Source of the DNA: Zancudomyces culisetae HAW-14-8
Taxonomy: Eukaryota; Fungi; Kickxellomycota
Direction: 5' to 3'
NCBI GenBank assembly: GCA_052426225.1
Contig: JBNJNM010000013.1
Coordinates: forward strand, 558,001-622,000
Length of the DNA stretch: 64,000 bases
Shown here: piece after piece, positions 19,857 to 39,296 of the stretch
How positions within the stretch are numbered: the stretch's first letter is position 1
How the letters are laid out: every line of letters begins with the position of its first letter
The notes under the pieces: model-generated
What the model saw: the letters and a program-made list of their open reading frames with translations, nothing else
What the model was told of the DNA's origin: nothing
The model's database searches: none
Translations under genes and position numbers: made by a program

Positions 19857-21520
19857 AATTTTCTGTATTTTCTCCTTTTCTCAATCAGGTCAATATTACT
19901 TGAAATCTTTCGGAAATTGAGATTATAAAAGAAAGTAAAGTAAAGTGGAGCGGGATGATAATGAAGTATTAAATCGAGAGTTTTTCTAAGATCGAACATG
20001 ATAAAAAAAAATGGAGGAAAAAGTTTAGTTCTCAGAGTAAAATTCATATTGATAGTATTAGCATAGTATATTGTGTAAAACTTCATTACACACACACACA
20101 CACTCTCTCTCTCCTCCACCCGTCCCTCCCCCCCCCCCCCTTCCGCCCTCTCCCAAAAAAAAAGCGAATATTTGCAGTTTAAAGTCTTTACTTCTTTTAA
20201 TCTACTGTTTATAGAAATAATACTTTGTACAAAAGCACAACCTCATTTCAAATACCATGTTAGTATCCAGTATGGGATTGTGATTAATAGGGATATTGTT
20301 TTTTAACATTTTATCAAAATCACTTGTTATCTGGTAACTAACATTACGTTCATTTTGGGTTATGTTTTTTTAGTATTTGTTCTTATAGTATAGTAAAAAT
20401 ATAGTTGGAAAACAAACCTAACAGTAAACGCAAACATCCTTGACGTTATTCAAAAACAGGAACAAAAACAAAAAAAGAGGTTTTACTTTGCCGAAACTTG
20501 GCGGAAATAATTGAACACTTCGATTTCAATAAGATCAGGGTCTTATCTTTTAGATAGGTACGAGGTTGAAAAGTAAAAAAATGGCGGGGGGAGGGGGGAG
20601 GAGGGGAGGGGAATAAAGAGTGTAGGAGTATAGTAGTATCATAAAATGTTATCATTCACATATATTGAACAGCTTTTCTACATAGTGGTCGTCAATCACA
20701 TTAACAGGTGTGCAAGTATTAAGATAAGATAAAATAGGTAACCCTATATGTATCTTTGAAACGAGTTCCACTACCATATATATAGTGCTTTTGACTAGAT
20801 CATTAGCACTGGATAAAAGAAAAGAAAAGAAAAGAAAAGAAAAGAAAAGAAAAGAAAAAAACGGCATGTATAACCTTTTATAGTTCTCATTTTCCCTTTT
20901 TTTTGTAACAGGTAGGATCCCCCTCCTTATCTCCTTCCCTCCTTCCTTCATCCGCTTCATCCGTTTCTCTGCTCTGTATACCTTTTTTTCACAAGGAAAG
21001 AGTAAGAACAAAGATAAAAGAAGGTGTAAATTTATAAATACCATAAAAACAAATTCTCAGTCAATATCATATATAGTTATGATGCTGTTATCATTACAAT
21101 ATGTTTTACTAATTCGGCGTCAGTAAAGGTAGTTTAAGTTAACTAAATTGATAAACCAGAGTTACGAAATAATAAATAAACAAGTTGCATTTAATCCTTT
21201 CAGGTTTGCTTATCTCCTATATTCCTTAATTCAAGTAAAATAAAAAAAAGGGGGAAGAGGTAAAGGGGAAAGAGTGAAAGAGTGAAAGAGGGAAAGAGGG
21301 AAAGAGGGAAAAGGAGAAAGGGAAAAAGTATTATTATAAAGTACGGGTAAATGAACTAAAAAAAGAAAAACAAGAAATATATAAATATGAACCGGGTTCT
21401 TGTACTTGAATACGCACCCTTGGACTCTTTTGCAATATTCCACAATACTTTATTTTTTTTATACATTAGTATCAATTAAATACCAATATTTTGTATACTT
21501 TGAAACATTTGGAATAAAGA

Positions 21521-24201
21521 AAAAAAGCAACAACAATAATGGCCAGTTTTGTTTCAAGATTCTCCTTTTCAAGAGTTGGAAACTATAGTGCGAGGATACT
21601 TGCCCCACTGGGAAGACGTTCTCTTACCACAGCAAATTCGGTTTTGGACCGTAAGTTATTATTTTAGTTATTATTGTAACTGTTATTATTGTCCGTTTCT
21701 GTATTTACTTCCACCACTTTTACTGTTTTAACTATTCAGTTTTGAATTTTGTTTAGTAATAACTCATTGTATTATATTCCGTATGTTATAAATAGCTACA
21801 CTGGGACTCACAGGTATTTGAATTGTATACTCGACTATGTTTAACCACGTACACTTTGTATATGCAGATATGAAAGCACGTATATTTCCGACTACCATAA
21901 ATATTGCGTCTAACAAAATGTTGGTATCACAGATGAGCAAAAGGAGTTGTACGAAGCTGCATCGAGTTTTGCAGAAGCCGAAATGGCACCTATTATGTTG
22001 AAGGTAAGTATGCAAATACGGATATGGATACGGATAAAAATACGCATGAAAATAGGAATAGAAATAAGAGTACAAATAGGAATACAAAGTGTGGTAGTTA
22101 TGAGAGTGTTCCATTGTACTAAAGAAGAATATACATAAAAATACCAGACACGGTATTGTTTGGTAGTATAGTGTATGGAGTGTGTCTAGTAACACTCACT
22201 TTTGAATTTGATAAACAACCAAATAGCTTGACCAAGATGAAAACATGCCAAAAGAGTTGCTATTAAAAGCAGCAGAGTTGGGATTTGGTATGATATATAC
22301 ATTATATACAATAAATTATATATAAGCATACAGTTTGTACATAACTATTTGTGTTACACCATTTATAATGAATGGAAAAAAAAGTAAATGGATGAATATA
22401 TTTAAAAATAATACACAAATTTGGTGATGAGTGATACAAACTGTATAATGGAAAGGATATAAAACATATGACATACGGTATATATTACTGGTTTATAAAA
22501 TTTACCACACTTTACTGTGATATTGCGTGTAAATAGGTAAATTATATGTTTCCGAAAAGAGTGGAGGAGTGGGGCTAGGTAAGTGAGCAAGAGTATATAA
22601 TGGTGGTGGATATGATACTGTTGATGTATGGTTGTAGGAGATGTGATAAAGTGATAAAATGATAAAATGAATTTATAGATCGATTATCTACATCGGTCGT
22701 ATTTGAGGGGCTATCTAGAGGCGATGTGTCAACTACTGCATATCTTACTCTGCACAAGTAATTTGCCACTTCCATTTACTGTTTCATAATTTTTCACAAA
22801 TTATAACAACCCGTTGTTGTTAATATTTATATAGTATGTGTGCATGGATGATTGACAAGTTTGGAAACCAAAGTCAAAGGGACAAGTATCTGGAAAACCT
22901 GCTAAATATGGATGTAAGTACGAACGTTGTGTTTGTAACTGTGAGCAATTTATGTGCATCCCATCCATGTTTAATACTACTCACCTTTTTGTTGAAACAT
23001 GTAAATTACATTGTAAATAACCCCCTATGAAATACTACTTATGATACACCAGCATTTAGGATCATACTGCCTGACAGAACCTGGAGCGGGAAGTGATGCA
23101 GCATCATTATCAACAAGTGCAAAGAAGGATGGATCTAAATATATTCTGAACGGATCAAAGGCGTTTATTTCAAATGGTGGAGACTCTGATATATATATTG
23201 TTATGGCAAGAACAGGAGGGGCAGGGCCAAAGGGTATATCAACATTTATTGTTCCAAAAGACTCGCCTGGACTGAGTTTTGGAAAGAAAGAAAAAAAGGT
23301 TGGATGGAGCTCACAACCCACACGAGGTTAGTGTATTTCGTTTATATTTATATTGAGTTTTAGATTGATTGTGGTGTGGGTTTGTATACGGTTTAATGTT
23401 AGAGCACCAAGAAATTTGATATGAAGTCGTGAAAATATGGATGTAAAATGATGAAGGTAATGACGTTTACCAAAACACTGGGATTTGAATACCAAATATA
23501 GCTGTTATATTTGAAAACTGCGAAGTACCGGCGGAGAATTTAATGGGGCGGGAGGGAGATGGGTTCAAATTTGCAATGATGGGTCTAGACGGAACCAAAG
23601 TGAATATATGCAAGTATAATATTCACATACATTAGCTATTTCTTCGAAATTAATCATCTACTGCTGGTATTTATTCTTATTGAAATCCATATTAATTATT
23701 AACTATAACCGTATAATCAATAAAATCAAGGATATCAAATATGCTCAAATAGCGTCATGTAGCCTTGGTGGTGCTGATTCCAGCTTGCGTGCTGCTCTGG
23801 AACACTCTGCTGTCCGAAAACAGTTCGGTACCCCAATCTTTGATTTCCAAAATACCCAGTTTGAGTTGGCTGAAATGGCAGGCCGACTTAATGCTTCGAG
23901 ATTGATGGTTAGACAGGCAGCAAGGATGTTGGATGAAAAATCACCAAGTGCAGTAGCATTCTGTGCTATGGTAAGTCAAACTGAAATGGGCAATTCCATA
24001 TACTTGAGTTAATGTAAAAATTCAGACAACATTTGTAGCTATAACTGCTCTTTCCGTATGAACAAATAGGCCAAAGAGTTTGCAACAGATACATGTTTCA
24101 ATATCTGTAACCGATCACTACAATTGCATGGTGGATATGGATATCTTAAGGACTATCCAGTTCAACAGTATATGCGGGATACGCGTGTTCACCAGATTTT
24201 G
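21521..24201 (+). repeat. Direct repeat, copy A of the ~2.7 kb ACAD8 duplication
   Basis: Near-identical to 36564-39233, including most introns. Confidence 0.95.
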
Positions 24202-24264
24202 GGTGGAACTAGCGAAATAATGAAGGTCATAGTTTCTAGGTCACTCGCAAAACTCATTTCTTAA
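21539..24264 (+). CDS. ACAD8: Isobutyryl-CoA dehydrogenase-like paralog (copy 1), 418 aa, 11 exons; lacks the catalytic Glu
   Basis: Exons 21539-21650, 21796-21813, 21933-22003, 22227-22287, 22537-22578, 22679-22757, 22835-22913, 23053-23326, 23502-23609, 23753-23970, 24070-24264 (1257 nt, open; requires a GC donor at 23610). ACAD8-type motifs [65 protein letters not shown]; R/S-rich mitochondrial presequence. Confidence 0.85.
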
Positions 24265-24838
24265 TATATTTCTCTTGTTTTGTTTTGTTTTATTTTTTTG
24301 GGAAGGGTTGATATATGTACCAAGGGAAATTTAGTGGTCTCGTGGGAAATACTATTAAAATAAATCAATAGTAACATTTTTTAAACTTAACTCGAGAATT
24401 CTTGCAAAAAGATTAAAAAGTAGAGGTACTGAACAACACAGATGGTACTGAACACATATATTTGACTGGACGCAATGAATCGCGACTCAAAGATGTACTT
24501 GAAGCGACACATTAAAATAGTATTTAGAGCGAAAATACTGATGAGTAGAGAGTAACAATGATCATAGTGACAATGAAGAATTAACATATAGCTCTAGATC
24601 CTAATGTAGGAGTGTTTTTTTACGTTTTAATGTTTTTTTTTGTTTTATCACACACGTATTACGTAAATATTTAGTAATGCATGTTATTTCAATTTGTAAA
24701 AAGAGTCAACAGCTATAATTAAGATATGCACATTTTATGAGCTGGTGTTATTGCAGTTATCTTTATCAAACCATTTCGTATTTTATATTTTAGCACTTTG
24801 AAAAGCTAAATAGATGTAAAATAATTGTTGCGTATAAT

Positions 24839-25513
24839 ATTATCACCAAACAGCTTTCAAAGACAGATTATGCTGGAAAACAAGCCCACGTTGAGCTGGC
24901 CGAACGAATGCGAAAGAGAGACCCAGGTAGCGCTCCCCAGGTTGGCGACCGAGTTGCATATGTTATAATCAAGGCGGCCAAAGGTGCTGCCGCTTACGAG
25001 CGTGCTGAAGATCCAATCTATGTGCTGAACAATGGCCTTCCGATTGATACACACTACTACCTTGAAAATCAGCTTGTAAAACCTCTTACCAGAATTTTTG
25101 AGCCCATTTTAACCGAAAAAGTTGGTTCTTTGTTTTCTGGTGATCACACCCGCTCAATTCATCTGACCACTCCAAATACTGGTGCTTTAATGAGGTTTGC
25201 TGTAAGGTCAGAAACTTGTCTGGGTTGTAGAGTTCCTCTACCGCCTTCCAAAAAGTCAGCCGGGTCTAATGCTGTTTGTGTTCACTGTTTGCCCAAACTT
25301 CCCGAAATATATTTTGCAAATCTCCAAATTGCCAATGCTTGTCAGACTCGATACGCTAGATTGTGGACTGAATGTCAACGGTGCCAGTCAATAATGCACG
25401 AAGATGTTGTTTGTTCCAACAGCGATTGTCCCATATTTTATATGCGGACAAAGGCACAGCATGATAACAATCAACAGATAAAAGTGATGAAAAGGTTTGA
25501 TTTGAGCTGGTAG
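24839..25513 (+). pseudogene. POL3: Orphan 3' fragment of DNA polymerase delta catalytic subunit (end of polymerase domain plus CysA/CysB); open frame, ATG at 24908 would give 201 aa
   Basis: IITKQLSKTDYAGKQAHVELAERMRKRDPGSAPQVGDRVAYVII...EDPIYVL...YYLENQL, CLGC..CVHC (CysA), CQRCQ...CSNSDCPIFYMR (CysB). Homology stops near 24839, with an in-frame TAG at 24791; I found no upstream POL3 exons in the window. Identity is secure; functional status is uncertain. Confidence 0.75.
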
Positions 25514-25866
25514 TTTTTGAATAGCACTCGCCGCTTTTTTGGTTTATTCTACTCTTATTATATTGTTATTGATATTCTTTTATACACCATCTTTTATAAC
25601 TTGAGATATAGCTAGGAGATACCTTTATTTTGTATATATTAGCTGAATAAAGCATAGTTTTGATCCATATAGCTAGTGTGGGTGACAAAGTTGTATATAA
25701 GGTGTATTCGTAAATGGTGTACTTTATTTGCCGACATAAACAAACAAACAATATTACTATGGCACTTAGTGTACCATTCCTAACTTTTTGTTTTGTAAAA
25801 GGAAATACAAAGCAGACCTAAAAAAACAGACACAAAAAACGACATTTTTGCTGAGACACTTGCAGA

Positions 25867-26844
25867 TCAAACTCTCAGAAGTATCTTTCCTGTTGTTTTT
25901 CCAGCTTCAATAAAGCGGTGAGCATCAGCTGCATCTTTAAGGTCAAACTCCTTGCATATGTTAACCTTTAAACTTCCACTTTCAACCAGATCGAATAGTG
26001 TTGAGCATGCCTCAGTAAACTCTTCCCTTGTACGAACGTAATTAAAGACCCCCGGGCTTACTAGAGCTATCTCTTTTTCACTCAAAACACTGGACTCAAC
26101 TTTTGGAATCACTCCCGACGCATTACCGAACGAAACTAGAGTTCCACACCGTCTGAGTGAATCAAACGAAGCTTGGAATGTTGATTTTCCCACGCCGTCA
26201 AACACTGCATTTACCATCTGACCATTGGTGATCTCTTTAACTCGTGTGGGGACATCCTCTCTAGTATAATAAATGATATGGTCTGCTCCCGCATCAGTTG
26301 CTAACTTGGCCTTTTCCTCATTAGATGTGGTGCCTATCACAGTAGCACCATAGTGTTTACAGAGCTGAACAAGCAACTGACCTGTTCCCCCTGCTGCAGC
26401 ATGAACAAGGACTATGTCTCCTTTTTTAACGTTGTAAGCCCTCTTGACAAAAGTCACAGCAGTGAGCCCCTGAAGTAATGATGCAGATGCAGTATCTAGC
26501 GCCATCTGCTCTGGAACAATAGCAGCATTCACTGGGTCAACCAGGGTATATTCAGCATACGCGTTATGTGAAGATAGATATGCCACTCTACTACCAACCT
26601 CAAATCCAGTCACGTCAGATCCAACCTCCTCGACTATCCCGGCACCTTCATGGCCTAATACAAGAGGCATACTAGCTTTAAAAAGTCCGGTTCTAAAATA
26701 CGTCTCAAGAAAATTGAGCCCTACAAACTTGTTTTTAACAAGTATTTTGTTTTTTTCAATTTGGGGCTTGGGGATATCCAAGTATTTGATAACGCTGACA
26801 TCTCCTGGTTTTTCAATTCTGATGGCCTTCATTGTTGAGCTCAT
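25867..26844 (-). CDS. NADPH:quinone oxidoreductase, zeta-crystallin/Qor-like MDR enzyme
   Basis: GLNFLETYFRTG, LGHEGAG, LQGLTA, HAAAGGTG, VFDGVGK, SFGNASG, TTGKILL. First ATG at 26844; the frame is open upstream to a TTG at 26940. Confidence 0.9.
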   Translation of the reverse strand: MSSTMKAIRIEKPGDVSVIKYLDIPKPQIEKNKILVKNKFVGLNFLETYFRTGLFKASMPLVLGHEGAGIVEEVGSDVTGFEVGSRVAYLSSHNAYAEYTLVDPVNAAIVPEQMALDTASASLLQGLTAVTFVKRAYNVKKGDIVLVHAAAGGTGQLLVQLCKHYGATVIGTTSNEEKAKLATDAGADHIIYYTREDVPTRVKEITNGQMVNAVFDGVGKSTFQASFDSLRRCGTLVSFGNASGVIPKVESSVLSEKEIALVSPGVFNYVRTREEFTEACSTLFDLVESGSLKVNICKEFDLKDAADAHRFIEAGKTTGKILLRV

Positions 26845-27695
26845 TCTAATTTGAAATTGAGGTTTTGAAAATTGTACTATTGATTTTGCACTTATCTTTA
26901 GGAAATCGAAATTCTTTTTAAAAAGTTCTCTAGATTTCAAGTTGAACTATTTATTCTGTTAACACAGTAAATGTATCTTGATATATTTAACTTTAGGTAT
27001 GTTTTTTCTATGTCGAGGGGAGATCATTTCATGTATTTATAGACACAAGTCCACCCTCCCTCATCAACACCTACACACTCAAATCACCTCTGTCTTTTTG
27101 CATTACTAAGCACCTACAATAATGATAGTCTATAAAACGAGACGTAGAAAACAACAATAAAACATTTGTTTCTAGCAAATCAAGTTTAAGTCGGACATCT
27201 ACTCTTTATTCCTCAATGAATTATCTAATAAACACCACACCAACCACTAAAATAGTTGTTTTGCGTAATATTTACCTAATTTATTCTCTTTTGCTCTTCT
27301 AATGACGTCATATTCTCTGGGAATTGAGTAAATGAACATATCTCCCGTAGTACTTTTTCATATTGAAATGGGAACATTCTACATCTATGTTCAACTCCAG
27401 AGCTTCTTTTATATTGTATTAATCAGCAACCAGGATTTAGCTGGTCTACAAATAGGCCTTAAAAACCAATAAAAATTAAATGATAAACCATTCCAAGGAC
27501 CATAGGGTCAAAGCAAGGGTAATAATAGGAAACAATCCTACAACATTTCACGTGTTTTTTCGAATCGTTCGATGTTTTGATTTTAGTAGATTTCAAACTA
27601 CAATCATAAATACTAGAAACGTAAAAATACGCGTTTGTAATATATTAAGCGGAGTAATGTGTATTAAAAAACAATAATTGTATATTCTATGCTGA

Positions 27696-28518
27696 CTAAT
27701 TGGAGGTAGTAGTGGTGGTGGTAGAGGAAATATCCACCTTTTCTGCATGTACAAGATTTTCCTGAGTAGTTTTAGGAGGCGCTTGGTTATCCATTTGATT
27801 AGTGACAAGATCGTTGGCGGCAGCTGTTACAGAAATAGATTGTGGATCATTTCCTGCTTCTAGCTTTCTCTGTTTTTTCGCCTCGAGGTATCTATACTTT
27901 TTCCCCAATCTAATCGATGCCTCATACGCTAGGCGCCGTTCGTTCAAAACTGTTTTGATTCTGGACATGGATTTTTTACACTATGAGATATTCAGAAAAA
28001 ACATTAGAATAGTTCCGACTAAATACACATCGCTTTGTAAGAATAAATGTAGTGAAGAAAAAAGGTAAACCGTACCTTGATCATTCTTGCTTTGTTGGAG
28101 TAAAACTCTTCTGATATATTCAAGCTTTTTGCCAGAGCCCTTTGACCAGCCAAAACATTACATTCTTTCAGCAGGACGATCCATAGTTTTTGCAGATCCT
28201 CCCAACTTTTTGTTCTCAATTCAGCAGCTCTCCAAGCTCGTCCTGATATTTCACACAATTTACACGGTTAAATAATTGGATTTTATATTCATCATCTTGT
28301 TACTTTTATCATAAGTGTTTATGTTTGATTATTTGAAGGTTTATATTACCTGTATGGATTTTATCCTTTGGCAGGGACTGGTTTCCCTCGAAAAATTCTT
28401 CCAATCCTCGTAATTTACTACAGGTGTGAAATGAACTTTGTGCACCTATAGAAGTTCTATTGATTGTTAGCCCTGAAAATACCCTTGTTAGGTTTCCTAC
28501 TAATCCTCTCATTGCCAT
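27696..28518 (-). CDS. MRPL4: Mitochondrial ribosomal protein uL29m (MRPL47/Mrpl4); 3 exons
   Basis: Exons 28518-28350, 28242-28076, 27980-27696. Motifs GLEEFF...[32 protein letters not shown] and [13 protein letters not shown]. Confidence 0.88.
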
Positions 28519-29949
28519 ATTTATATATTTAATTGATTTTTGCAATTAATGTTAATCACACTTTTATCAAGAAGAGACAAACAAAACTTTTATTGTTTTT
28601 TTTAGCAGGTATTTTGATATACAACATCATACTATATCTCAAGAATATCAAATAAGCATAATTCAAAATGCTGATCGGGTAGGCGAAAAAGTTTAGGTAT
28701 TTTAAAATGCAAAACAGCAATATTTAGGTTTTTTTTAACTCAAATCATACTTTGAATATTCAATATCAGATGATAAGGCTTACTATCTTCTTGTGTATGT
28801 TAATATACATTACATCTTTTCTTCTAAGTCCTTCCACACGAAGCATAAATACATCTTGCTTCTACCTTGATGAATCACGGGGACTGGCACTCAAATCTTT
28901 TTTTTGCACAATTCATATATATGAGTTTTTGAAGTATTATCGCCATAATTTTATCAATCTAGTACCACCACTCGTGTGAATTTTTATTTGCAAGTCGCTG
29001 CTGAGCCACTGTATGCTTTCCATAAATCTGATATTTTCGACTGTACCATGGCATCACGCATTATACACATATGTGTATGTGAAATCCCAGGTAGAAACCA
29101 GCCAATATTACGTTTGCAATGAAAAAAAATGTGAAGACAGTACCTTTTTTTTTCTTGTTTACACGTAGTACTAGCCTGACAGTATTTTAACCGACGTTTT
29201 TGGAGTGATAGAAATATCAAATTAGAATACTGAGGGATAGAACGAGACGATTCTGCTAGTTTTTCTTTGCATCACCTATACCATCAATCACAGCCATAGG
29301 CGTTTCTGTGTTTGAGCATGTTTCTTATTGAAGCTTTTTATTGGTTTTAATATTCATTGGATTTTTTTTAGTTACTAACTTTGGTTTAATTTATTTTCTA
29401 TTTATTGCGATCTAATCAAGGAAAAAAACGTTTATGAAAAACCATTTCCACTAAAAAAAACCAGCAAATTAATTTTGCGCAATTACCTAACAATGTAAAT
29501 CAGTGTCAAGTGGAAAATACAAAAGTCAAAGCTGTTAATAATCCGGGAGTTCGTGCATATTGTTGTGAATGGGTGTATCAAAATATATTTTCTTATAATT
29601 CCACAGGTTCAACAATATCTGCAAAAAAATTTTTTGTATTTTTACAAATGTAGTCCCAACACTCGGCTTTTGAACTTTGACAGGTTTCTGTCTTAACTCA
29701 AAGTATACACGTGTTATAAACTAAAAATTTTATAGGCTAATGCTGATTTTGAAAAAAAAGTTCAAAGTTACTATTATGGCGATTTGGAACAGAGAATAAA
29801 ACAAAAAAAAACAATATAAATAGATCCAAACTTTCTCCTGTCAGGATTCTATCATTCATCTTAAATAACAGATAGATACAGAAAGAGGCAAAATCCCAAA
29901 GAGTCTGCACCAACAGCTCTTAGTATTTTCCAGAAATCAGACCAGCAAA

Positions 29950-31419
29950 ATGAGTGATCATGAAAAAGCAATGGGAATTGAGGTTGAGGATAGCCATGGC
30001 AGAGAAGGAGAAAGACATGAGGTTAATAAGGGTTTGGAGTTTACTGAAGAGGAGGTATCCTTGCTAAGAAGGGCACTAAAAAAAATTGACATAAGAGTAT
30101 TGCCGATTATGTACCTTATGTACCTTGCGGGAGCAATGGATAGATATAACATGGGTGCGGCATTGATCAATGGAATAATAGAGAAATTAGATCTGACATC
30201 AACAGATCAAGGAAATATTAACTCTCTGTTTTTCACCACATACATTGCTATGGAACCATTTGCCAATATAATCTTGAAAAAAACCCGCCCATCATTCTGG
30301 TTTCCATTTATTGGAATATCGTGGTCAATCACATGTATGTGTATGGCAGCAGTAACAAATGCAACACAGGCAGTAATTATCAGACTGCTTTTGGGTATCT
30401 TTGAAGCAGGATTCACACCAGGAATGATCACATACTTGGCATACTGGTACACCAGAGAAGATCTAGGTTCGCGAATGTCCATCATGTTTTCAGCGCATCC
30501 AGCCTCAGGGATTGTCAATCTGCTATATGGAGCATTCGCCTCAATAAAAATTGGCAAATTGATAGCCTACCAGTCCATTTTTATCTTTGGTGGAACAATA
30601 ACACTGGTTATTGCCATTGCAGCTATCTTTGTAATTGAAGACTACCCCGAGCATGTAAAGTTTTTAACAGAAAAAGAAAAAGCTCTTGTTGTGAAGAGAA
30701 TCAATGCTAGTCAGGGAAGTGCCGAAAGATCCCATGTCACATTTAAATCCACTCTCGAAACTATCCTCGACTGGAAGGTGTGGGCATTTGCCATTCTTAA
30801 CTTGTCCAGAACCGCCTCCTTGCTGATTTTGGGGCTTATTGGTCCAACCATTATAAAATCGTTTGGATTTTCAAGATCTGAAGCTACATTCCTGTTTGCA
30901 GTTGTGTCAGCAATTGGTACTTGTAGTACAATTACATTTGCATTTGTATTCCAAAAAGTCCCATACTGGATTCGAATCGTAGGTGCCGATATCATAACAG
31001 CCGCTTTCTTTGCAGTAGTTGCGTTTTCCACTAATAATGTCGTACGACTCGTCTTTATGTTTGCTCTAGGAATCCCAGTCTATGCTATTTTCCCAATAGC
31101 TACAAGTTGGATGTCAGTAAATGCTGGTAGTACTCAAAAGCGTGCGTTGATGTCTGCGGTATTTGCGATGGTTGGTAATGTTGTTGGTCTTGCTGTTCCG
31201 TATTTGTTCACCACTGCAACTGCACCAAAGTACATCGCTGGATATTCACTTGCTTTTGGATTGTATGCTCTATCAATTGTAGTAGCACTAACACTTGCGT
31301 TTGCACTCAACAAGGCAAACAAACAGCGGGAAGCGCATCCCCAAGATGTATCTCATTTGACTCCTGAAGAACAAAGAGCTATGCACGATTTCCACCCAAG
31401 CTTTAGGTATATACTCTAA
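29950..31419 (+). CDS. MFS transporter, anion:cation symporter (Dal5/Tna1-like) family
   Basis: Intronless, 489 aa, about 12 hydrophobic segments. Motifs KKIDIRVLP, DRYNMG, RLLLGIFEAG..PG...YLAYWY..EDLGSR and C-terminal HPSFRYIL. Confidence 0.9.
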   Translation: MSDHEKAMGIEVEDSHGREGERHEVNKGLEFTEEEVSLLRRALKKIDIRVLPIMYLMYLAGAMDRYNMGAALINGIIEKLDLTSTDQGNINSLFFTTYIAMEPFANIILKKTRPSFWFPFIGISWSITCMCMAAVTNATQAVIIRLLLGIFEAGFTPGMITYLAYWYTREDLGSRMSIMFSAHPASGIVNLLYGAFASIKIGKLIAYQSIFIFGGTITLVIAIAAIFVIEDYPEHVKFLTEKEKALVVKRINASQGSAERSHVTFKSTLETILDWKVWAFAILNLSRTASLLILGLIGPTIIKSFGFSRSEATFLFAVVSAIGTCSTITFAFVFQKVPYWIRIVGADIITAAFFAVVAFSTNNVVRLVFMFALGIPVYAIFPIATSWMSVNAGSTQKRALMSAVFAMVGNVVGLAVPYLFTTATAPKYIAGYSLAFGLYALSIVVALTLAFALNKANKQREAHPQDVSHLTPEEQRAMHDFHPSFRYIL

Positions 31420-32210
31420 TAGATATAAATGTAACCAATCCCGCTAAACTCACTACTACTTGTGCGTGTATTTGGATTTTATTTGACTTTAAATTTTATG
31501 TATTTTGTTTATGTTGTTTTATTAAATATTATTTCTACATTATTCAAACACGCTGTAGTGGATAACAGTATGAAGGTGTCAGTACCTCTATGTTTCTTTT
31601 TATAAATTGTATATAATATTGATTTTTTTGAAAGACTGTAAACATGCCACTCCAATGAAGAATGCATTAACATACACTTCCAACAAAACTGAACATCACA
31701 GAAGTAAGAAGAAATACCTCAAGTCTTTAGAAGAATCATATAAAGCGCCTATAATTTAGGTTTGGATGTGGGGGGGGGGGGCTCACCAGTGGTTAAATAT
31801 TATCAAAAATTTAAACTAACTTGCCCACTGTCGTCTTTACTATTCGGTTTATACACTAACGATATATTTAACGAAATAAAAGACGTAGCTGCAACAGACC
31901 TATCTAACTTGAAACCTCTAATATCAACTAAATTACAAGGATTACAGTTTGATAATAGCAGGACTCTTGTAAGTACACTAAAAAAAGAAAATTTCAAGGT
32001 ACCAGTACCAGCAGAAATGAAGAGATTGAAATGTTTGCAAGTATCAATGTGGCAGGAATGAAGTAATGTTTAGATAAAGTAAAATAAAAAATGCTTAAAA
32101 AACATAACTGTTATAAAAAAGGTAAAGTGGGAGATACCAGAACATATTCTAAAAATTGGTAGATACCATCCCACACGCGTACCCCAAACTTGGTATCAAA
32201 TGCTAGGAAT

Positions 32211-34595
32211 CTACCTGTCACCCATAGAACTGACTGCTGCGTTAAACCCAGCGTGTGTGTTGTCTTTGTTGATGAATTCACATCCTGAAGTGGTATCACA
32301 CCTTTGTGCCTGTTCTATAGGGTTGTATAATAGCTCAGTAAAATCAACCCCTGAAACATAATCCTTATGCTTAGATATGGGGAAATTTTGGTCAAATGTT
32401 GGAGACTGGGTTTTAGACATCTCTTTGTAATTCGCGCTCAAAATAGAATGATAAACACGTTCAAGCATCTTTTTGCACTGCTCAAGCAATGCAGTATTTT
32501 GAAGAGATGTATAACGATTAACAACCTTTACAAAATATTTGCTAGGATCATCATCCAGGCTTGGGTTGTTATTAATATGAATTTCATGATTCTGTGGCTG
32601 TTTCTTTGATATACCGAGGTCCCCCAATATCAAATTGAGTTTTTCTGCCTCCTTGATAGCTGGTTTCAAATCGATTGCCATTATAATTTGTTTTCCATCA
32701 CTTTCATTATCCAAAGGCAATAAAAACTCGCTATTTTTACTCAGACTCTCTTTTGCAAAAATTCGACTTAGTAGGAATGGTTCATGAATCTTGGAGGAAA
32801 GAGTGTTGAAGCAGCACTCTCGTTTGTAATAGTTGCTTCCATTTGGAACTAGCCATGGATTGTAGTCATATGATGAAAGCATCATCTTTTTAAAGTTCTC
32901 GGGGATGTTTTTAAACTTGGAATTGGCCTTATCATAGCTTTTTTTAACATCAGATATATTGTTAGCCAAATAAAAATACATCTTTACTAGTGGGGTTGTT
33001 GCTTTAAGCTGCTCAAAATATTCGATTATTACTTTTTTGCCATTTACAATTGCATTGTGTCTACTCAGGTTCCTGATATACTCTAGATTTGTGAGGTGCC
33101 TGAAAACATGAGAGGTCAAATAGTTTAACTCTATATCAAACTTTTCTATTGGAAACGTTGAAAGTAGCCAGTAAAACACTTCTATAAAGTAGATAGTATT
33201 GTTGATTAATATAACTTTGGCAGCTTTTACTCTCTCTGGAGGAATATCCACATTCTCATAGTAAGCTACTTCTGAAGCATTCAAATGAAGATTGGTCACA
33301 CAGGTATTCAGCATCAGTGTACAGTATCGTAGTATAAAGTACTCAATGTTCATTGCGTTTACTATGCCTGGATTGCGTACTGAAAACGCCAATATATTTT
33401 CCAGTTCATTATAAAACCTTATAACCATCATTCTCTGAAACACTGTAGCGTTTGTAAACAATTTCAGGTAGCGTCGATAATCTAGTTCCATTTCCTTTGC
33501 TATTGTAATTTCTCTCCGGTTGATAAACGTTACAATTCTGTATCTTATTTTATTTAGCATCACATATCAACCAAATGTATCAAACTTGAATTCCCCTTGG
33601 TTGTTTAGAATTACACCACCATTATATACCGCTTTGGAGTTTGACAATACAAAACTGGTATTACAATGCCATAGACGATCATTGCTGGGTAGGTTTACAA
33701 AAATGTCTTTGAGCTGTATAGCTGGCAGCAGTGTCAAACCCTCAGATACTAACATGCAATAAATTTATATAGACCACCAAAGACGTCTTCCAAGTTCCTT
33801 TTCTACTATTGAATATTTACCCTCTTTCTCAGGTGTGCTGACGGAATGTGCATCCACCATATGCAATTTCATTGAAATGGCCAGCTTTGTTGCCAAATGG
33901 AAATATTTTGTGCATTGCGATGCAAGTCCAGTGACGGAATAATATCTACTTAGCACCTGCATTGTCCATATGCCCAAACAATCTGGATGAATAAATATGT
34001 TTTTCATGTATTCGGTGGTATAGTTTAATGCTCGTTTACGCCTCTCTCGAGTAAATACTTTAAAAAACTTGTCATCTTTTAATACAGTTGATCCCATCAG
34101 TAAAAGAGTACAAACCACGTACTTTGGCACTTGAAAACTCTTTACGTTTTGTATAAACTGGGGAATTCTTACAACATTTGCAAGCAAAGGATAACGATAC
34201 ATAAACATGTACATTAGCTCATCTATCACATCTCGTAGGAGTCTTGATAACTCTATATCCTCCGCATCCCTACCAATTATATTCTGAATGTCCACATCAA
34301 CGATGCAGGCATCTGTCATCAAATTCTTTATTTCATGCCTTATACCATGATTGGAGCTTTCATTGGCTGTGGTTTTCATTTTTTTGCTCTGTTTTTTCAA
34401 TTCTTCAACTCTTTTTTGTATATCTGCGAGTTTTTTAAACAAAGGCTCATTCACGGGTCTCTTATGCACATTTCTTTTTTCATTAACTCTAAACGTTATT
34501 ATGTATTTTTTGTAGGTATTGTCAGCATTTGACTTTGCCCTTGTTCGTTTGCCACCACCAGCAGATTCTTCTCTTTCAGAATTTTTTTGAGCCAT
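32211..34595 (-). pseudogene. Fungal-specific transcription factor (middle-homology-region type) gene interrupted by two in-frame stops
   Basis: Three track ORFs (33765-34712, 33567-33755, 32211-33563) share one frame, separated only by TAA at 33765-33767 and TGA at 33567-33569. Motif ATKLAISMKLH...EKELGRRLWWSI*I resembles the fungal_trans consensus. Start placed at ATG 34595 (an upstream in-frame start at 34712 is possible). Confidence 0.6.
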
Positions 34596-36563
34596 TCTAT
34601 AAAAGTAGAGTAGAAATAATCCTGGAATGAGTTGATTGATACGAGATAGTAATAACTGCCACTCATACCAAGTACTGTGTTTATATACTACTATTTTTAT
34701 TTTTAGGCTCATATCTTTAGTGTTTTGCCCTTTTTGATACTTGGAATATGAAACTCAATCTTTTCATATATCCGTACTTCTGACCAACTCCTTTGATTGA
34801 TTGAAAATAGTTGATATTTTGAATTGGGAACAAAAAAAACAAACACATATCTTCTAACAAAAACAAAAACAGGATGAAAAAAAGATGAAAAAAAGATGAA
34901 ATAAAGATGAAAAAAAAAAAGATGAAAGCTCAACTCAACTTTGTTATTCCCAACAAACTCAATTCAATATAATCTCGAATCTATTCAAATCTCAGTTAAT
35001 ATACTGGGGTTTATGTAACATTCATCTAAAGATGCCAGTACAACCGAGAAAATTTCCTATGGTAACATAAAAACATACCGCTATTAGATGAAAACCACTA
35101 CCTCATCTTTTCCAGATTAAGCCTAGGCTTCCAAAACAAAACACTCGCAACATTTTCAATATTCCATTCATCGGAATGGCTCTAATTAAATATCAGCTGA
35201 GTGGGTGTGATTTACGAGATACTAATATTATAGATAAATATATATTCGTATCTACTTGGTTATCTTTTCAAAGCTAATATATACAACTAGATCTAACCCA
35301 CCTTATTACCTTCACTGAAATACAACTATATATCCCTTGTGTCGTGGAGACAATCTTGTAAACAAAGTCTTTTTTTTCAGTTATTTACTTTATGATACCC
35401 TTCCCATTTGTTAATCTCACTTCAGTAACAACAACAAAGTATTTTTTTATACTTCGTATCAGGACGACGGCTTTAAATTCAATCAAAAACTAAGGTACAT
35501 CAAGTAGTATGATGCTATGGCCTAACATTATGGATTTTACTGTCTCAAATATCCAGCTTATTAAGTGTGAATATACTAAGACGAACCAAAATGGTCAAAT
35601 ACGATTCAATTGGTTTTCCGGCTAAACTGTACTTAATATCCTCACACTAATTATTTCACATATTGTAGAGTCTGAACTTTTATTCAGGCCGCAATCCCAT
35701 CTGTTCTTGTTAAAATTCGTTTTTGTTTTACTCGTTAGTATATTGTAATGACGCAACTAGATCCTTACACTAAAAAAAAATCAAATAAATAAAAATACAA
35801 TACCAGTAAAATTCTAGGGCTCCAGTCATAAATTTGGAGTCGATTAGATATTGTTGTAAAGTTTACATTGTTCTTGCATTATGGGATTTTGCATGGAATA
35901 TATATCACTTATTTGTAGCCATTTTTTACATTAGAAAATTAGTAAATGTGAGATAAAAACGATTGAGATTATAGCGCGATTTAGCATGCTAAGGACGTGT
36001 ATTCGCATAAATCAAGTAGAACAAACTGATACTCGAGCTATATCATTTATCAGTGCTTGATTTATTTCATTATACATCATTTATACCTTAATATTTGGTG
36101 GCTTTTCGGGAACCTGATGGCTAGTGCTGCCTCTGCTTAGGTCATGAATATTTTCAGCTTTTTAAATAAAGCCCAAATAGCTATGAAACAAAAAGAAGAA
36201 AAAAACCAGCATAATTAACCGACTCTAGCACGCAGATATTTGCTGACGAATAGTCTTTTATGAAGTAATCAAGTTATGCGATTTTATTCGCACCAACTCA
36301 TTTTATAAAAACGCAATTTTGCTAGACCAATATTTCACCACAGACCAGCTGGGATAGCAATTCCACTCGCTATTCAAGCTTGTTTCGGATAAAGCGAATA
36401 TTCAAATAGCGCACCAAATTGGCTGGTAGTTACACAGTCAATCCTTACAAATTGTGAGACACACACACAAACAACACTAAAAGAGATATACAAAAGATAG
36501 TATAAATTAGTACGTTTTCGCACCAACCGAAGTAGATTAGATAAACACAATTCCCATAAAAAC

Positions 36564-39233
36564 AAAAAAGCAACAACAATAATGGCCAGCTTTGTTTCAA
36601 GATTCTCCTTTTCAAGAGTAGGAAACTATAGTGCGAGGATACTTGCCCCACTGGGAAGACGTTCTCTTACCACAGCAAATTCGGTTTTGGACCGTAAGTT
36701 ATTATTTTAGTTATTATTGTAACTGTTATTATTGTCCGTTTCTGTATTTACTTCCACCACTTTTACTGTTTTAACTATTCAGTTTTGAATTTTGTTTAGT
36801 AATAACTCATTGTATTATATTCCGTATGTTATAAATAGCTACACTGGGACTCACAGGTATTTGAATTGTATACTCGACTATGTTTAACCACGTACACTTT
36901 GTATATGCAGATATGAAAGCACGTATATTTCCGACTACCATAAATATTGCGTCTAACAAAATGTTGGTATCACAGATGAGCAAAAGGAGTTGTACGAAGC
37001 TGCATCGAGTTTTGCAGAAGCCGAAATGGCACCTATTATGTTGAAGGTAAGTATGCAAATACGGATATGGATACGGATAAAAATACGCATGAAAATAGGA
37101 ATAGAAATAAGAGTACAAATAGGAATACAAAGTGTGGTAGTTATGAGAGTGTTCCATTGTACTAAAGAATATACATAAAAATACCAGACACGGTATTGTT
37201 TGGTAGTATAGTGTATGGAGTGTGTCTAGTAACACTCACTTTTGAATTTGATAAACAACCAAATAGCTTGACCAAGATGAAAACATGCCAAAAGAGTTGC
37301 TATTAAAAGCAGCAGAGTTGGGATTTGGTATGATATATACATTATATACAATAAATTATATATAAGCATACAGTTTGTACATAACTATTTGTGTTACACC
37401 ATTTATAATGAATGGAAAAAAAAGTAAATGGATGAATATATTTAAAAATAATACACAAATTTGGTGATGAGTGATACAAACTGTATAATGGAAAGGATAT
37501 AAAACATATGACATACGGTATATATTACTGGTTTATAAAATTTACCACACTTTACTGTGATATTGCGTGTAAATAGGTAAATTATATGTTTCCGAAAAGA
37601 GTGGAGGAGTGGGGCTAGGTAAGTGAGCAAGAGTATATAATGGTGGTGGATATGATACTGTTGATGTATGGTTGTAGGAGATGTGATAAAGTGATAAAAT
37701 GATAAAATGAATTTATAGATCGATTATCTACATCGGTCGTATTTGAGGGGCTATCTAGAGGCGATGTGTCAACTACTGCTTACATAACCATTCATAAGTG
37801 AGTTTCGTTATTTTGCTTGTATGTAACACGTTAGATACTAAAACGTCATGATTTCGGTATGAAATATATAGTATGTGCGCTTGGATGATTGACAAGTTTG
37901 GAAACCAAAGTCAAAGGGACAAGTATCTGGAAAACCTGCTAAATATGGATGTAAGTACGGATGTTGTGTTTGTAACTGTGAGCAATTTATGTGCATCCCA
38001 TCCATGTTTAATACTACTCACCTTTTTGTTGAAACATGTAACTTGTATTGTAAATAACCCCCTATGAAATACTACTTATGATACACCAGCATTTGGGATC
38101 ATACTGCCTGACAGAACCTGGAACGGGAAGTGATGCGGCATCACTATCAACAAGTGCAAAGAAGGAAGGATCTAAATATATTCTGAACGGATCAAAGGCG
38201 TTTATTTCAAATGGTGGAGACTCTGATATATATATTGTTATGGCAAGAACAGGAGGGGCAGGGCCAAAGGGTATATCAACATTTATTGTTCCAAAAGACT
38301 CGCCTGGACTGAGTTTTGGAAAGAAAGAAAAAAAGGTTGGATGGAGCTCACAACCCACACGAGGTTAGTGTATTTCGTTTATATTTATATTGAGTTTTAG
38401 ATTGATTGTAGATTGGGTTTGTATACGGTTTAATGTTGGAGCACCAAGAAATTTGATATGAAGCCGTGAAAATATGGATGTAAAATGATGAAGGTAATGA
38501 CGTTTACCAAAACACTGGGATTTGAATACTAAATATAGCTGTGATATTTGAAAACTGCGAAGTACCGGCGGAGAATTTAATGGGGCGGGAGGGAGATGGG
38601 TTCAAGTTTGCAATGATGGGTCTAGATGGTGGACGAATAAACATATGTAAGTATAACAAATATTGTCATTTTCTGTTACTAATTAATTTATTTATTTAAT
38701 CCGGACTTTTATTTATTAATACTTCACAATCCGTGCGTGATATTGTTGGTTTAATCTATGGATACTTCGAATATGCTCAAATAGCATCATGTAGTCTTGG
38801 TGGTGCTGATTCCAGCTTGCGTGCTGCTCTAGAACACTCTGCTGTCCGAAAACAGTTCGGTACCCCAATCTTTGATTTCCAAAATACCCAGTTTGAGTTG
38901 GCTGAAATGGCAAGCCGACTTAATGCTTCGAGATTGATGGTTAGACAGGCAGCAAGGATGTTGGATGAAAAATCACCAAGCGCAGTAGCATTCTGTGCTA
39001 TGGTAAGTCAAACTGAAATGGACAATTCCATATGCTTGAGTTAATGTAAAAATTCAGACAACATTTGTAACTATAACTGTACTTTCCATATGAACAAATA
39101 GGCCAAAGAGTTTGCAACAGATACATGTTTCAATATCTGTAACCGGTCACTACAATTGCATGGTGGATACGGATATCTTAAGGACTATCCAGTTCAACAG
39201 TATATGCGGGATACGCGTGTTCACCAGATTTTG
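36564..39233 (+). repeat. Direct repeat, copy B of the ~2.7 kb ACAD8 duplication
   Basis: Near-identical to 21521-24201. Confidence 0.95.
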
Positions 39234-39296
39234 GAAGGAACTAACGAAATCATGAAAATTATAGTTGCTCGTTCCTTGTTTAAATTGCTATATTAG
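36582..39296 (+). CDS. ACAD8: Isobutyryl-CoA dehydrogenase (copy 2), canonical active site; 11 exons
   Basis: Same exon structure as copy 1, all GT-AG. Retains [18 protein letters not shown] and [11 protein letters not shown], with the catalytic Glu codon GAA at 39234-39236. Confidence 0.9.

Follow-up and report, generated by a model that had tools for sequence, protein, structure and literature searches.

Three divergence islands at the active site of a probably gene-converted ACAD8 pair in Zancudomyces culisetae point to a glutamate-less paralog that has a counterpart in Mortierellaceae

In most acyl-CoA dehydrogenases (ACADs) Glu376 serves as the catalytic base, while IVD and LCAD, which have a small residue at this position, use a glutamate from helix G at position 254 (PMC10925408). 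ACADs without such a base have been described in bacteria: in benzylmalonyl-CoA dehydrogenase IaaF the catalytic glutamate is replaced by glycine and benzylmalonyl-CoA is decarboxylated, the loss of CO2 replacing proton removal (PMC8360864), and ChsE1/2 and ChsE4/5 are heterotetrameric ACADs in which the catalytic glutamate is missing from one partner (PMC8399759). With regard to duplicated genes, the human red/green opsins and RHD/RHCE have homogenised introns and divergence peaks around selected codons, and in the opsins conversion tracts that cross selected sites are purged (PMC3924837). Here, we analyse two IBD (ACAD8)-like genes, copies A and B, in a stretch of 64,000 nucleotides from Zancudomyces culisetae HAW-14-8 (contig JBNJNM010000013.1, positions 558,001 to 622,000; hereafter the window), which are nearly identical over long blocks and deeply diverged in three islands located at the active site, and of which copy A lacks the catalytic glutamate.

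The genome comprises 27,093,596 bases in 25 contigs with about 35% G+C, the pair residing on contig C13; its presumed source is the PacBio HiFi assembly published for this insect-gut fungus (27.18 Mb, 26 contigs, 35.56% G+C, 48x; PMC12611240). The copies are separated by 12.3 kb, and both have ten introns and an open frame of 418 codons. Single exons were used as queries in database searches of the gene pair, and joined gene models in local scripts; residue numbers of human mature IBD are those of the window copies minus 23. The gene models, putative conversion blocks and islands are as follows.

21539-24264, forward strand: copy A, an intact 11-exon IBD/ACAD8-like gene, 418 amino acids, glutamate-less (G-type)
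Copy A exons 1-6: 21539-21650, 21796-21813, 21933-22003, 22227-22287, 22537-22578, 22679-22757
Copy A exons 7-11: 22835-22913, 23053-23326, 23502-23609, 23753-23970, 24070-24264
36582-39296, forward strand: copy B, an intact canonical IBD/ACAD8 gene, 11 exons, 418 amino acids, with Glu399 (human Glu376) and Arg278
Copy B exons 1-6: 36582-36693, 36839-36856, 36976-37046, 37267-37327, 37577-37618, 37719-37797
Copy B exons 7-11: 37872-37950, 38090-38363, 38539-38646, 38785-39002, 39102-39296
21521-22739 (partner 36564-37779), forward strand: youngest putative conversion block, 2 substitutions and one 3-bp indel
22738-22844 (partner 37778-37881), forward strand: island A, codons 122-131 and intron 6
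22845-23584, forward strand: older putative conversion block, 18 differences in 740 bp, with an identical run at 23131-23372
23588-23763 (partner about 38625-38795), forward strand: island B, codons 275-285 and intron 9
23610-23752, forward strand: intron 9 of copy A, predicted splicing with a GC donor (GCAAGT; GTAAGT in copy B)
23740-24201, forward strand: older putative conversion block, 13 differences in 463 bp
24202-24264 (partner 39234-39296), forward strand: island C, the 3' edge of homology, starting at codon 399

Judged by its sequence, copy B is an ordinary IBD: it is closest to ACAD8 among the ACADs, carries the LEG motif (Leu375-Glu376) and keeps the whole active site of human IBD (1RX0), which is also the best Protein Data Bank match for exons 6 and 11. 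Identity to vertebrate IBDs is about 60%, and Leu375 and the FAD and ETF residues are shared. Copy A likewise descends from the ACAD8 clade and differs from copy B at only 15 of 418 residues (96% protein identity). Among 116 near-invariant IBD columns it departs at five, I103L, G254T, R255K, E376G and N379S; each of these is invariant in 74/74 IBD orthologs and kept by copy B, and all five lie inside the islands. In island A, codons 122-127 all differ (AYLTLH in copy A, AYITIH in copy B), four of them purely synonymously, codons 130-131 differ synonymously and intron 6 is unalignable; the diagnostic residue is Leu126 (22750-22752), which corresponds to human Ile103 on helix E, presumably a pocket residue given this position. 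Island B (GTKVNI versus GGRINI, with an unalignable intron 9) contains the diagnostic Thr277 (23594-23596; human Gly254, the site of the catalytic glutamate in IVD) and Lys278 (human Arg255), which occurs in copy A only. Codon 399, with which island C begins, aligns to human Glu376 and encodes glycine (GGT) in copy A and the catalytic glutamate (GAA) in copy B, and Ser402 replaces asparagine in copy A. Thus, with Gly at 376 (Glu in all 74 orthologs) and a threonine aligned to the helix G Glu254 of IVD, copy A has no base at either known site, which sets it apart from IVD and LCAD in spite of the small residue at 376 that it has in common with them. Randomly placed segments of island size cover all three diagnostic columns with P=2e-4, or 1/45 if two of the islands are tied to introns. 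The original prediction had described islands A and B in the same way and mapped the islands to helix E, the start of helix G and the Glu376 loop, and both points are borne out by alignment to human IBD and by the model overlay given below. It had also placed the start of island C at the catalytic codon, which is correct; this island is the 3' edge of homology, however, with no converted DNA beyond it. Its view of the differences as specificity or catalytic residues agrees with their placement at the active site and understates them, as no catalytic base at all is left in copy A. An origin of the islands from another ACAD of the same genome was rejected, as the motifs differ, and a search of this genome for a third IBD-like gene as donor returned copies A and B only. 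Other ACADs of the genome include MCAD-, SBCAD-, IVD- and GCD-like genes and two ACAD10/11-like genes; there is no clear SCAD motif.

Self-comparison of the window by BLAST revealed one large repeat, 21514-24237 versus 36556-39269, with 93.9% identity. Homology of the copies starts about 18 bp before the ATG and stops at the stop codon; promoters and 3' ends are unrelated. As originally counted by eye, the first 1.2 kb contain exactly two substitutions, at 21547 and 21577 and without effect on the protein, and a single 3-bp indel at 22122-22124 within an AAG run, with zero substitutions over the 1,159 aligned bases of 21578-22739, so that residues 1-121, including the presumed mitochondrial leader, are identical. 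The middle blocks differ at 31/1,203 positions (about 2.6%), as opposed to 2/1,216 (0.16%) in the whole 5' block (P=5e-8). The earlier statement that exons and 8 of 10 introns are nearly identical is therefore consistent with the single 93.9% repeat but needs grading, as only introns 1-5 are identical and introns 7, 8 and 10 differ at 5/139, 6/175 and 6/99 positions. None of 20,000 shuffles attained the longest identical run, 1,237 columns (mean 290, maximum 820), which rules out chance. In the 40 codons of the islands, in contrast, the proportion of synonymous differences (pS) is 0.82 and that of nonsynonymous differences (pN) 0.21 (P=2e-8), with frames and splice sites intact, while pS is 0.02-0.07 outside. 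Saturated synonymous sites next to identical introns cannot be explained by a single recent duplication, and the low pN together with intact frames and splice sites shows that both copies have long been under purifying selection. The introns of islands A and B occupy positions common to other fungal IBD genes and hence predate the duplication. Significant patchiness, near-saturated synonymous sites adjoining identical DNA and divergence peaks lying on codons decisive for function, as expected of concerted evolution with selected peaks, are thus all present. Accordingly, the history proposed in the original prediction, an old IBD duplicate subject to repeated ectopic gene conversion with selection acting at the islands, is very probably right as a process. 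Compared with the opsins and RHD/RHCE, the pair has three peaks and near-saturated synonymous sites, and the protected change is the loss of a catalytic base.

Support for selection at the islands comes from a different group of fungi. Exon 11 of copy A, used as a query, brought up a single fragment that has glycine at the catalytic site, and its contig contains an IBD-like gene that has the letters of copy A at all three sites and belongs to a Podila cluster. Using the Podila protein as query, two types of IBD were identified in Mortierellaceae, both annotated as IBD, a G-type and a glutamate-bearing E-type, which occur together in Dissophora globulifera, Actinomortierella ambigua and Podila verticillata. 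Among 60 proteins, only columns 126, 277 and 399 separate 15/15 G-types from 45/45 E-types without exception, the G-type having Leu (E-type Ile), Ser/Thr (Gly) and Gly (Glu), respectively. As each island holds one diagnostic column and copy A shows the derived residue in every one of these columns, this comparison independently supports the selection postulated at the islands. The G-types (e.g. Podila horticola KAF9321307.1) share with copy A not only Leu103, Ser/Thr254 and Gly376 but also Asp94 and Thr102, an ordinary IBD beside them in the species and the intron positions adjoining islands A and B, and in an Entomortierella protein the motifs of islands B and C are almost the same as in copy A. 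They differ in forming a separate clade, in keeping Arg255 and in being only about 77% identical to their E-type paralog, which speaks against recent conversion there, unlike in the window pair. The FAD residues as well as Leu375, Gly377, Glu380 and the ETF-docking Glu211, for which a salt bridge to ETF has been described (PMC10925408), are kept in 15/15 G-types. A model of the Podila G-type (predicted local distance difference test, pLDDT, 88) overlays human IBD at 1.1 A and places the diagnostic residues on helices E and G and on the J-K loop; the protein is encoded by a continuous, intron-free frame on a short contig, indicating a spliced transcript. The G-types (P0401-P0439) comprise two subclades, both supported; in one of them Ser379, as in copy A, prevails, and a second duplication may be behind this split. 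When metagenomes were scanned with copy A exon 11, solely Glu-bearing IBDs were obtained, and a protein cluster atlas gave only generic IBD clusters. Two fragments with an apparent Ala376 (P0294, P0297) proved to be alignment artefacts, both having Glu, and tandem ACAD fusions among the first matches are prokaryotic and unrelated. No paper on a glutamate-less Mortierellaceae subfamily was found in a literature search that was incomplete.

Based on these findings, the following history may be proposed. An IBD (ACAD8) gene would have been duplicated long ago, and copy B would have remained an ordinary IBD while the pocket of copy A was remodelled by I103L, G254T and E376G, together with R255K and N379S, at the cost of the proton-abstracting glutamate. 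Ectopic gene conversion would go on exchanging DNA between the copies, and tracts crossing any of the three sites would cost the pair one of its functions and be purged by selection, such that old divergence survives around these sites alone, the neighbouring intron being carried along. That copy A is a selected, functionally distinct paralog held against conversion in this way is likely, and that it is still functional is slightly more so. Speculatively, copy A would be an FAD enzyme that needs no base and passes electrons to ETF. Its substrate could be a short 2-carboxy acyl-CoA, such as methyl-, ethyl- or dimethylmalonyl-CoA, which would fit an IBD-sized pocket; the C2 carboxyl group would leave as CO2 in place of proton removal, with Gly376 giving the carboxylate room and Ser/Thr254 possibly binding it. 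The outcome might be a bypass of B12-dependent propionyl-CoA disposal or the repair of carboxylase side products.

Other histories of the pair have to be considered. Mixed reads of the two copies might have produced false identity, but collapse does not give graded blocks of divergence, the island residues match proteins of unrelated fungi, and reads of a HiFi assembly at 48x, if the published one is indeed the source, normally far exceed a 2.7-kb repeat with unique flanks; such an artefact is hardly credible. No independent assembly came to light when one of the neighbouring genes was looked up. It might also be argued that the mosaic is neutral, in that introns diverged by indels and blocked conversion locally while copy A decays as a pseudogene whose island changes are drift. 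In two of the islands an entire intron is indeed unalignable, conversion can be halted by large indels (PMC3924837), and mosaic duplicates are common in this genome. However, pN is far below pS within the islands, the islands begin at codons upstream of the introns, and the exact trio of the Mortierellaceae would not arise again by drift, and we therefore consider this reading very improbable. More weight is due to the question of whether the glutamate-less type arose once or twice. In a tree from which 21 rows were left out (18 unnamed proteins from metagenomes or transcriptomes and 3 G-types that were redundant or partial), the Mortierellaceae G-types form one clade (99/97) that is sister to the E-types of the same family (100/99 together), and the window pair lies within Zoopagomycota (97/96). 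Approximately unbiased (AU) tests reject a clade formed by copies A and B and the G-types (p=4e-12) and Mucoromycota E-types without the G-types (p=2e-5), so that two duplications with convergent changes in separate fungal lineages are the simplest reading of the sequences. A transfer from the animal host is unsupported, as the pair groups with Zoopagomycota. Alternatively, the G-type might be one ancient paralog common to Mucoromycota and Zoopagomycota that passed on the trio, while conversion with the ordinary IBD of each lineage erased the backbone signal. Conversion demonstrably erases history in the window pair and could hide shared descent of copy A, the same three states recur, and Val109, Asp117 and Thr125, typical of Mortierellaceae G-types, are found in both window copies (21539-22739 and 36582-37779), which in itself hints at some conversion from copy A into copy B. 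In view of the tree positions, the AU tests and the lack of a G-type in other fungi among the 120 matches listed, we regard a single ancient origin as rather unlikely.

Regarding the reaction, oxidative decarboxylation of an alkylmalonyl-CoA by copy A is the leading candidate, if short of probable, by analogy to IaaF, a functional model that has the ACAD fold and glycine for the catalytic glutamate in common with copy A. IaaF differs in being bacterial, in belonging to a separate subfamily and in using bulky substrates and O2, not ETF (PMC8360864), and no iaa genes occur among the scanned neighbours of copy A. Since FAD and ETF residues are kept and one particular pocket is fixed without drift, a ligand-specific redox role is favoured over a dead site. 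Copy A might nevertheless be a non-catalytic subunit or acyl-CoA sensor that enters the mitochondrion along with copy B, forms mixed tetramers with it via nearly identical interfaces and tunes or dampens IBD under its own promoter. The absence of a base at 376 and 254, the identical residues 1-121, the high overall identity and the unrelated promoters would fit this role, exchange of Glu to Ala abolishes SCAD activity (PMC13027082), and there are heteromeric ACADs of which one subunit has no base (PMC8399759). Yet the ChsE enzymes are encoded by operon neighbours and have two FAD sites per tetramer, whereas copy A and the G-types keep all FAD residues checked and copy A has its own FAD and ETF contacts intact; moreover, no partner ACAD is encoded within 10 kb of the Mortierellaceae G-type genes, and a dead site should drift, while Gly376, Ser/Thr254 and Leu103 are fixed in 15/15 G-types and recur in copy A. 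A purely regulatory role thus seems doubtful. Equally doubtful is another base-free chemistry, for instance enoyl-CoA reduction, in which water would donate the proton and acrylyl- or methacrylyl-CoA would be detoxified, or an elimination of the kind catalysed by sulfinopropionyl-CoA desulfinase. The same pocket conservation speaks in its favour, and base-less ACADs with other reactions exist (PMC8360864, PMC9293079), but the pocket has no acidic residue elsewhere, unlike that of cyclohexene-carboxyl-CoA dehydrogenase, Asp117 at the start of helix E is common to copy B and a few ordinary IBDs, and family matches are to generic ACADs only.

Several observations weigh against a working, decarboxylating copy A. 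Its intron 9 requires the GC donor, which could be a recent disabling change, the one in-frame alternative (donor 23600, acceptor 23730) being weaker. This donor and Lys255 in human numbering occur in copy A alone and could reflect a recent weakening; all 15 Mortierellaceae G-types keep Arg255 where copy A has Lys278. Thr378 is changed to Ala in 10/15 G-types, with a possible loosening of FAD binding, and the IaaF motif is GGG where that of copy A is LGG. The genomic neighbours of the Mortierellaceae G-type genes gave no pathway clue, and searches with copy A exon 11 and the Podila protein returned no Harpellales protein. The genome encodes a B12-dependent methylmalonyl-CoA mutase and a PCC-beta-like gene, and no PrpD match was found in it; with the mutase intact, a bypass would not be obligatory. 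It is only a tentative suggestion that Harpellales and Mortierellaceae independently made a base-free decarboxylating ACAD from an IBD duplicate by the same three substitutions, which would convert methylmalonyl- or ethylmalonyl-CoA to acrylyl- or crotonyl-CoA and CO2 as a B12-independent bypass or repair reaction. The same caution applies to the associated idea that conversion in this genome has trimmed the difference between the copies until little more than a natural minimum of switch residues is left.

The DNA between the copies consists of further duplicates.

24265-36563, no strand assigned: spacer with other duplicated segments, each patchily 92-96% identical to a copy elsewhere in the genome

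It contains a 3' fragment of a DNA polymerase delta gene, a Zn-dependent dehydrogenase, an MFS transporter and a fungal transcription-factor-like gene. The polymerase fragment (24838-25513, forward strand) has a frame of 201 amino acids that matches the C-terminus of a longer gene, located at a distance of about 44 kb, with 100% identity, and the two have an identical DNA run of 342 bp in common. The Zn-dependent dehydrogenase (25867-26940, reverse strand) differs from a paralog about 45 kb away (L104, 4037-5107) at 44 amino acids in an island pattern; most of them cluster within residues 3-7, 66-100, 115-162 and 277-303, and the long stretches that separate these clusters are identical. Differences of the MFS transporter (29950-31419, forward strand) from its paralog on contig C11 (L108) are confined to residues 4-44 and 185-268, and conversion-like patchiness thus also occurs between contigs. 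The transcription-factor-like segment (31991-35667) is 95-96% identical to two other places on the contig, and about 20 more matches, with 68-72% identity, are spread over the genome. An inverted acyl-CoA-oxidase-like pair on contig C10 (L106 and L107, about 113 kb apart) has 98.9% identity over a length of 5.9 kb, which includes small peaks and a stretch of 1,025 bp without any difference. As four other duplicate pairs are mosaic, gene conversion looks common in this genome.

Conversion with selected peaks and base-less bacterial ACADs are already known, while a conserved, apparently twice-evolved glutamate-less subfamily of fungal ACAD8, its switch residues marked by conversion, appears to be undescribed. 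It is currently annotated as ordinary IBD in many Mortierellaceae genomes. The pair represents a natural mapping experiment, in which only 15 of 418 residues differ and the three protected ones are confirmed by an unrelated fungal family, and copy B provides a matched active control that makes the reaction of copy A directly testable. Where mosaic paralogs are as common as here, divergence peaks could reveal function-switching residues genome-wide. The vitamin B12 used in eukaryotic propionate metabolism must come from bacteria. Alkylmalonyl-CoA decarboxylation, if true, would add a step to eukaryotic propionate and branched-chain metabolism.

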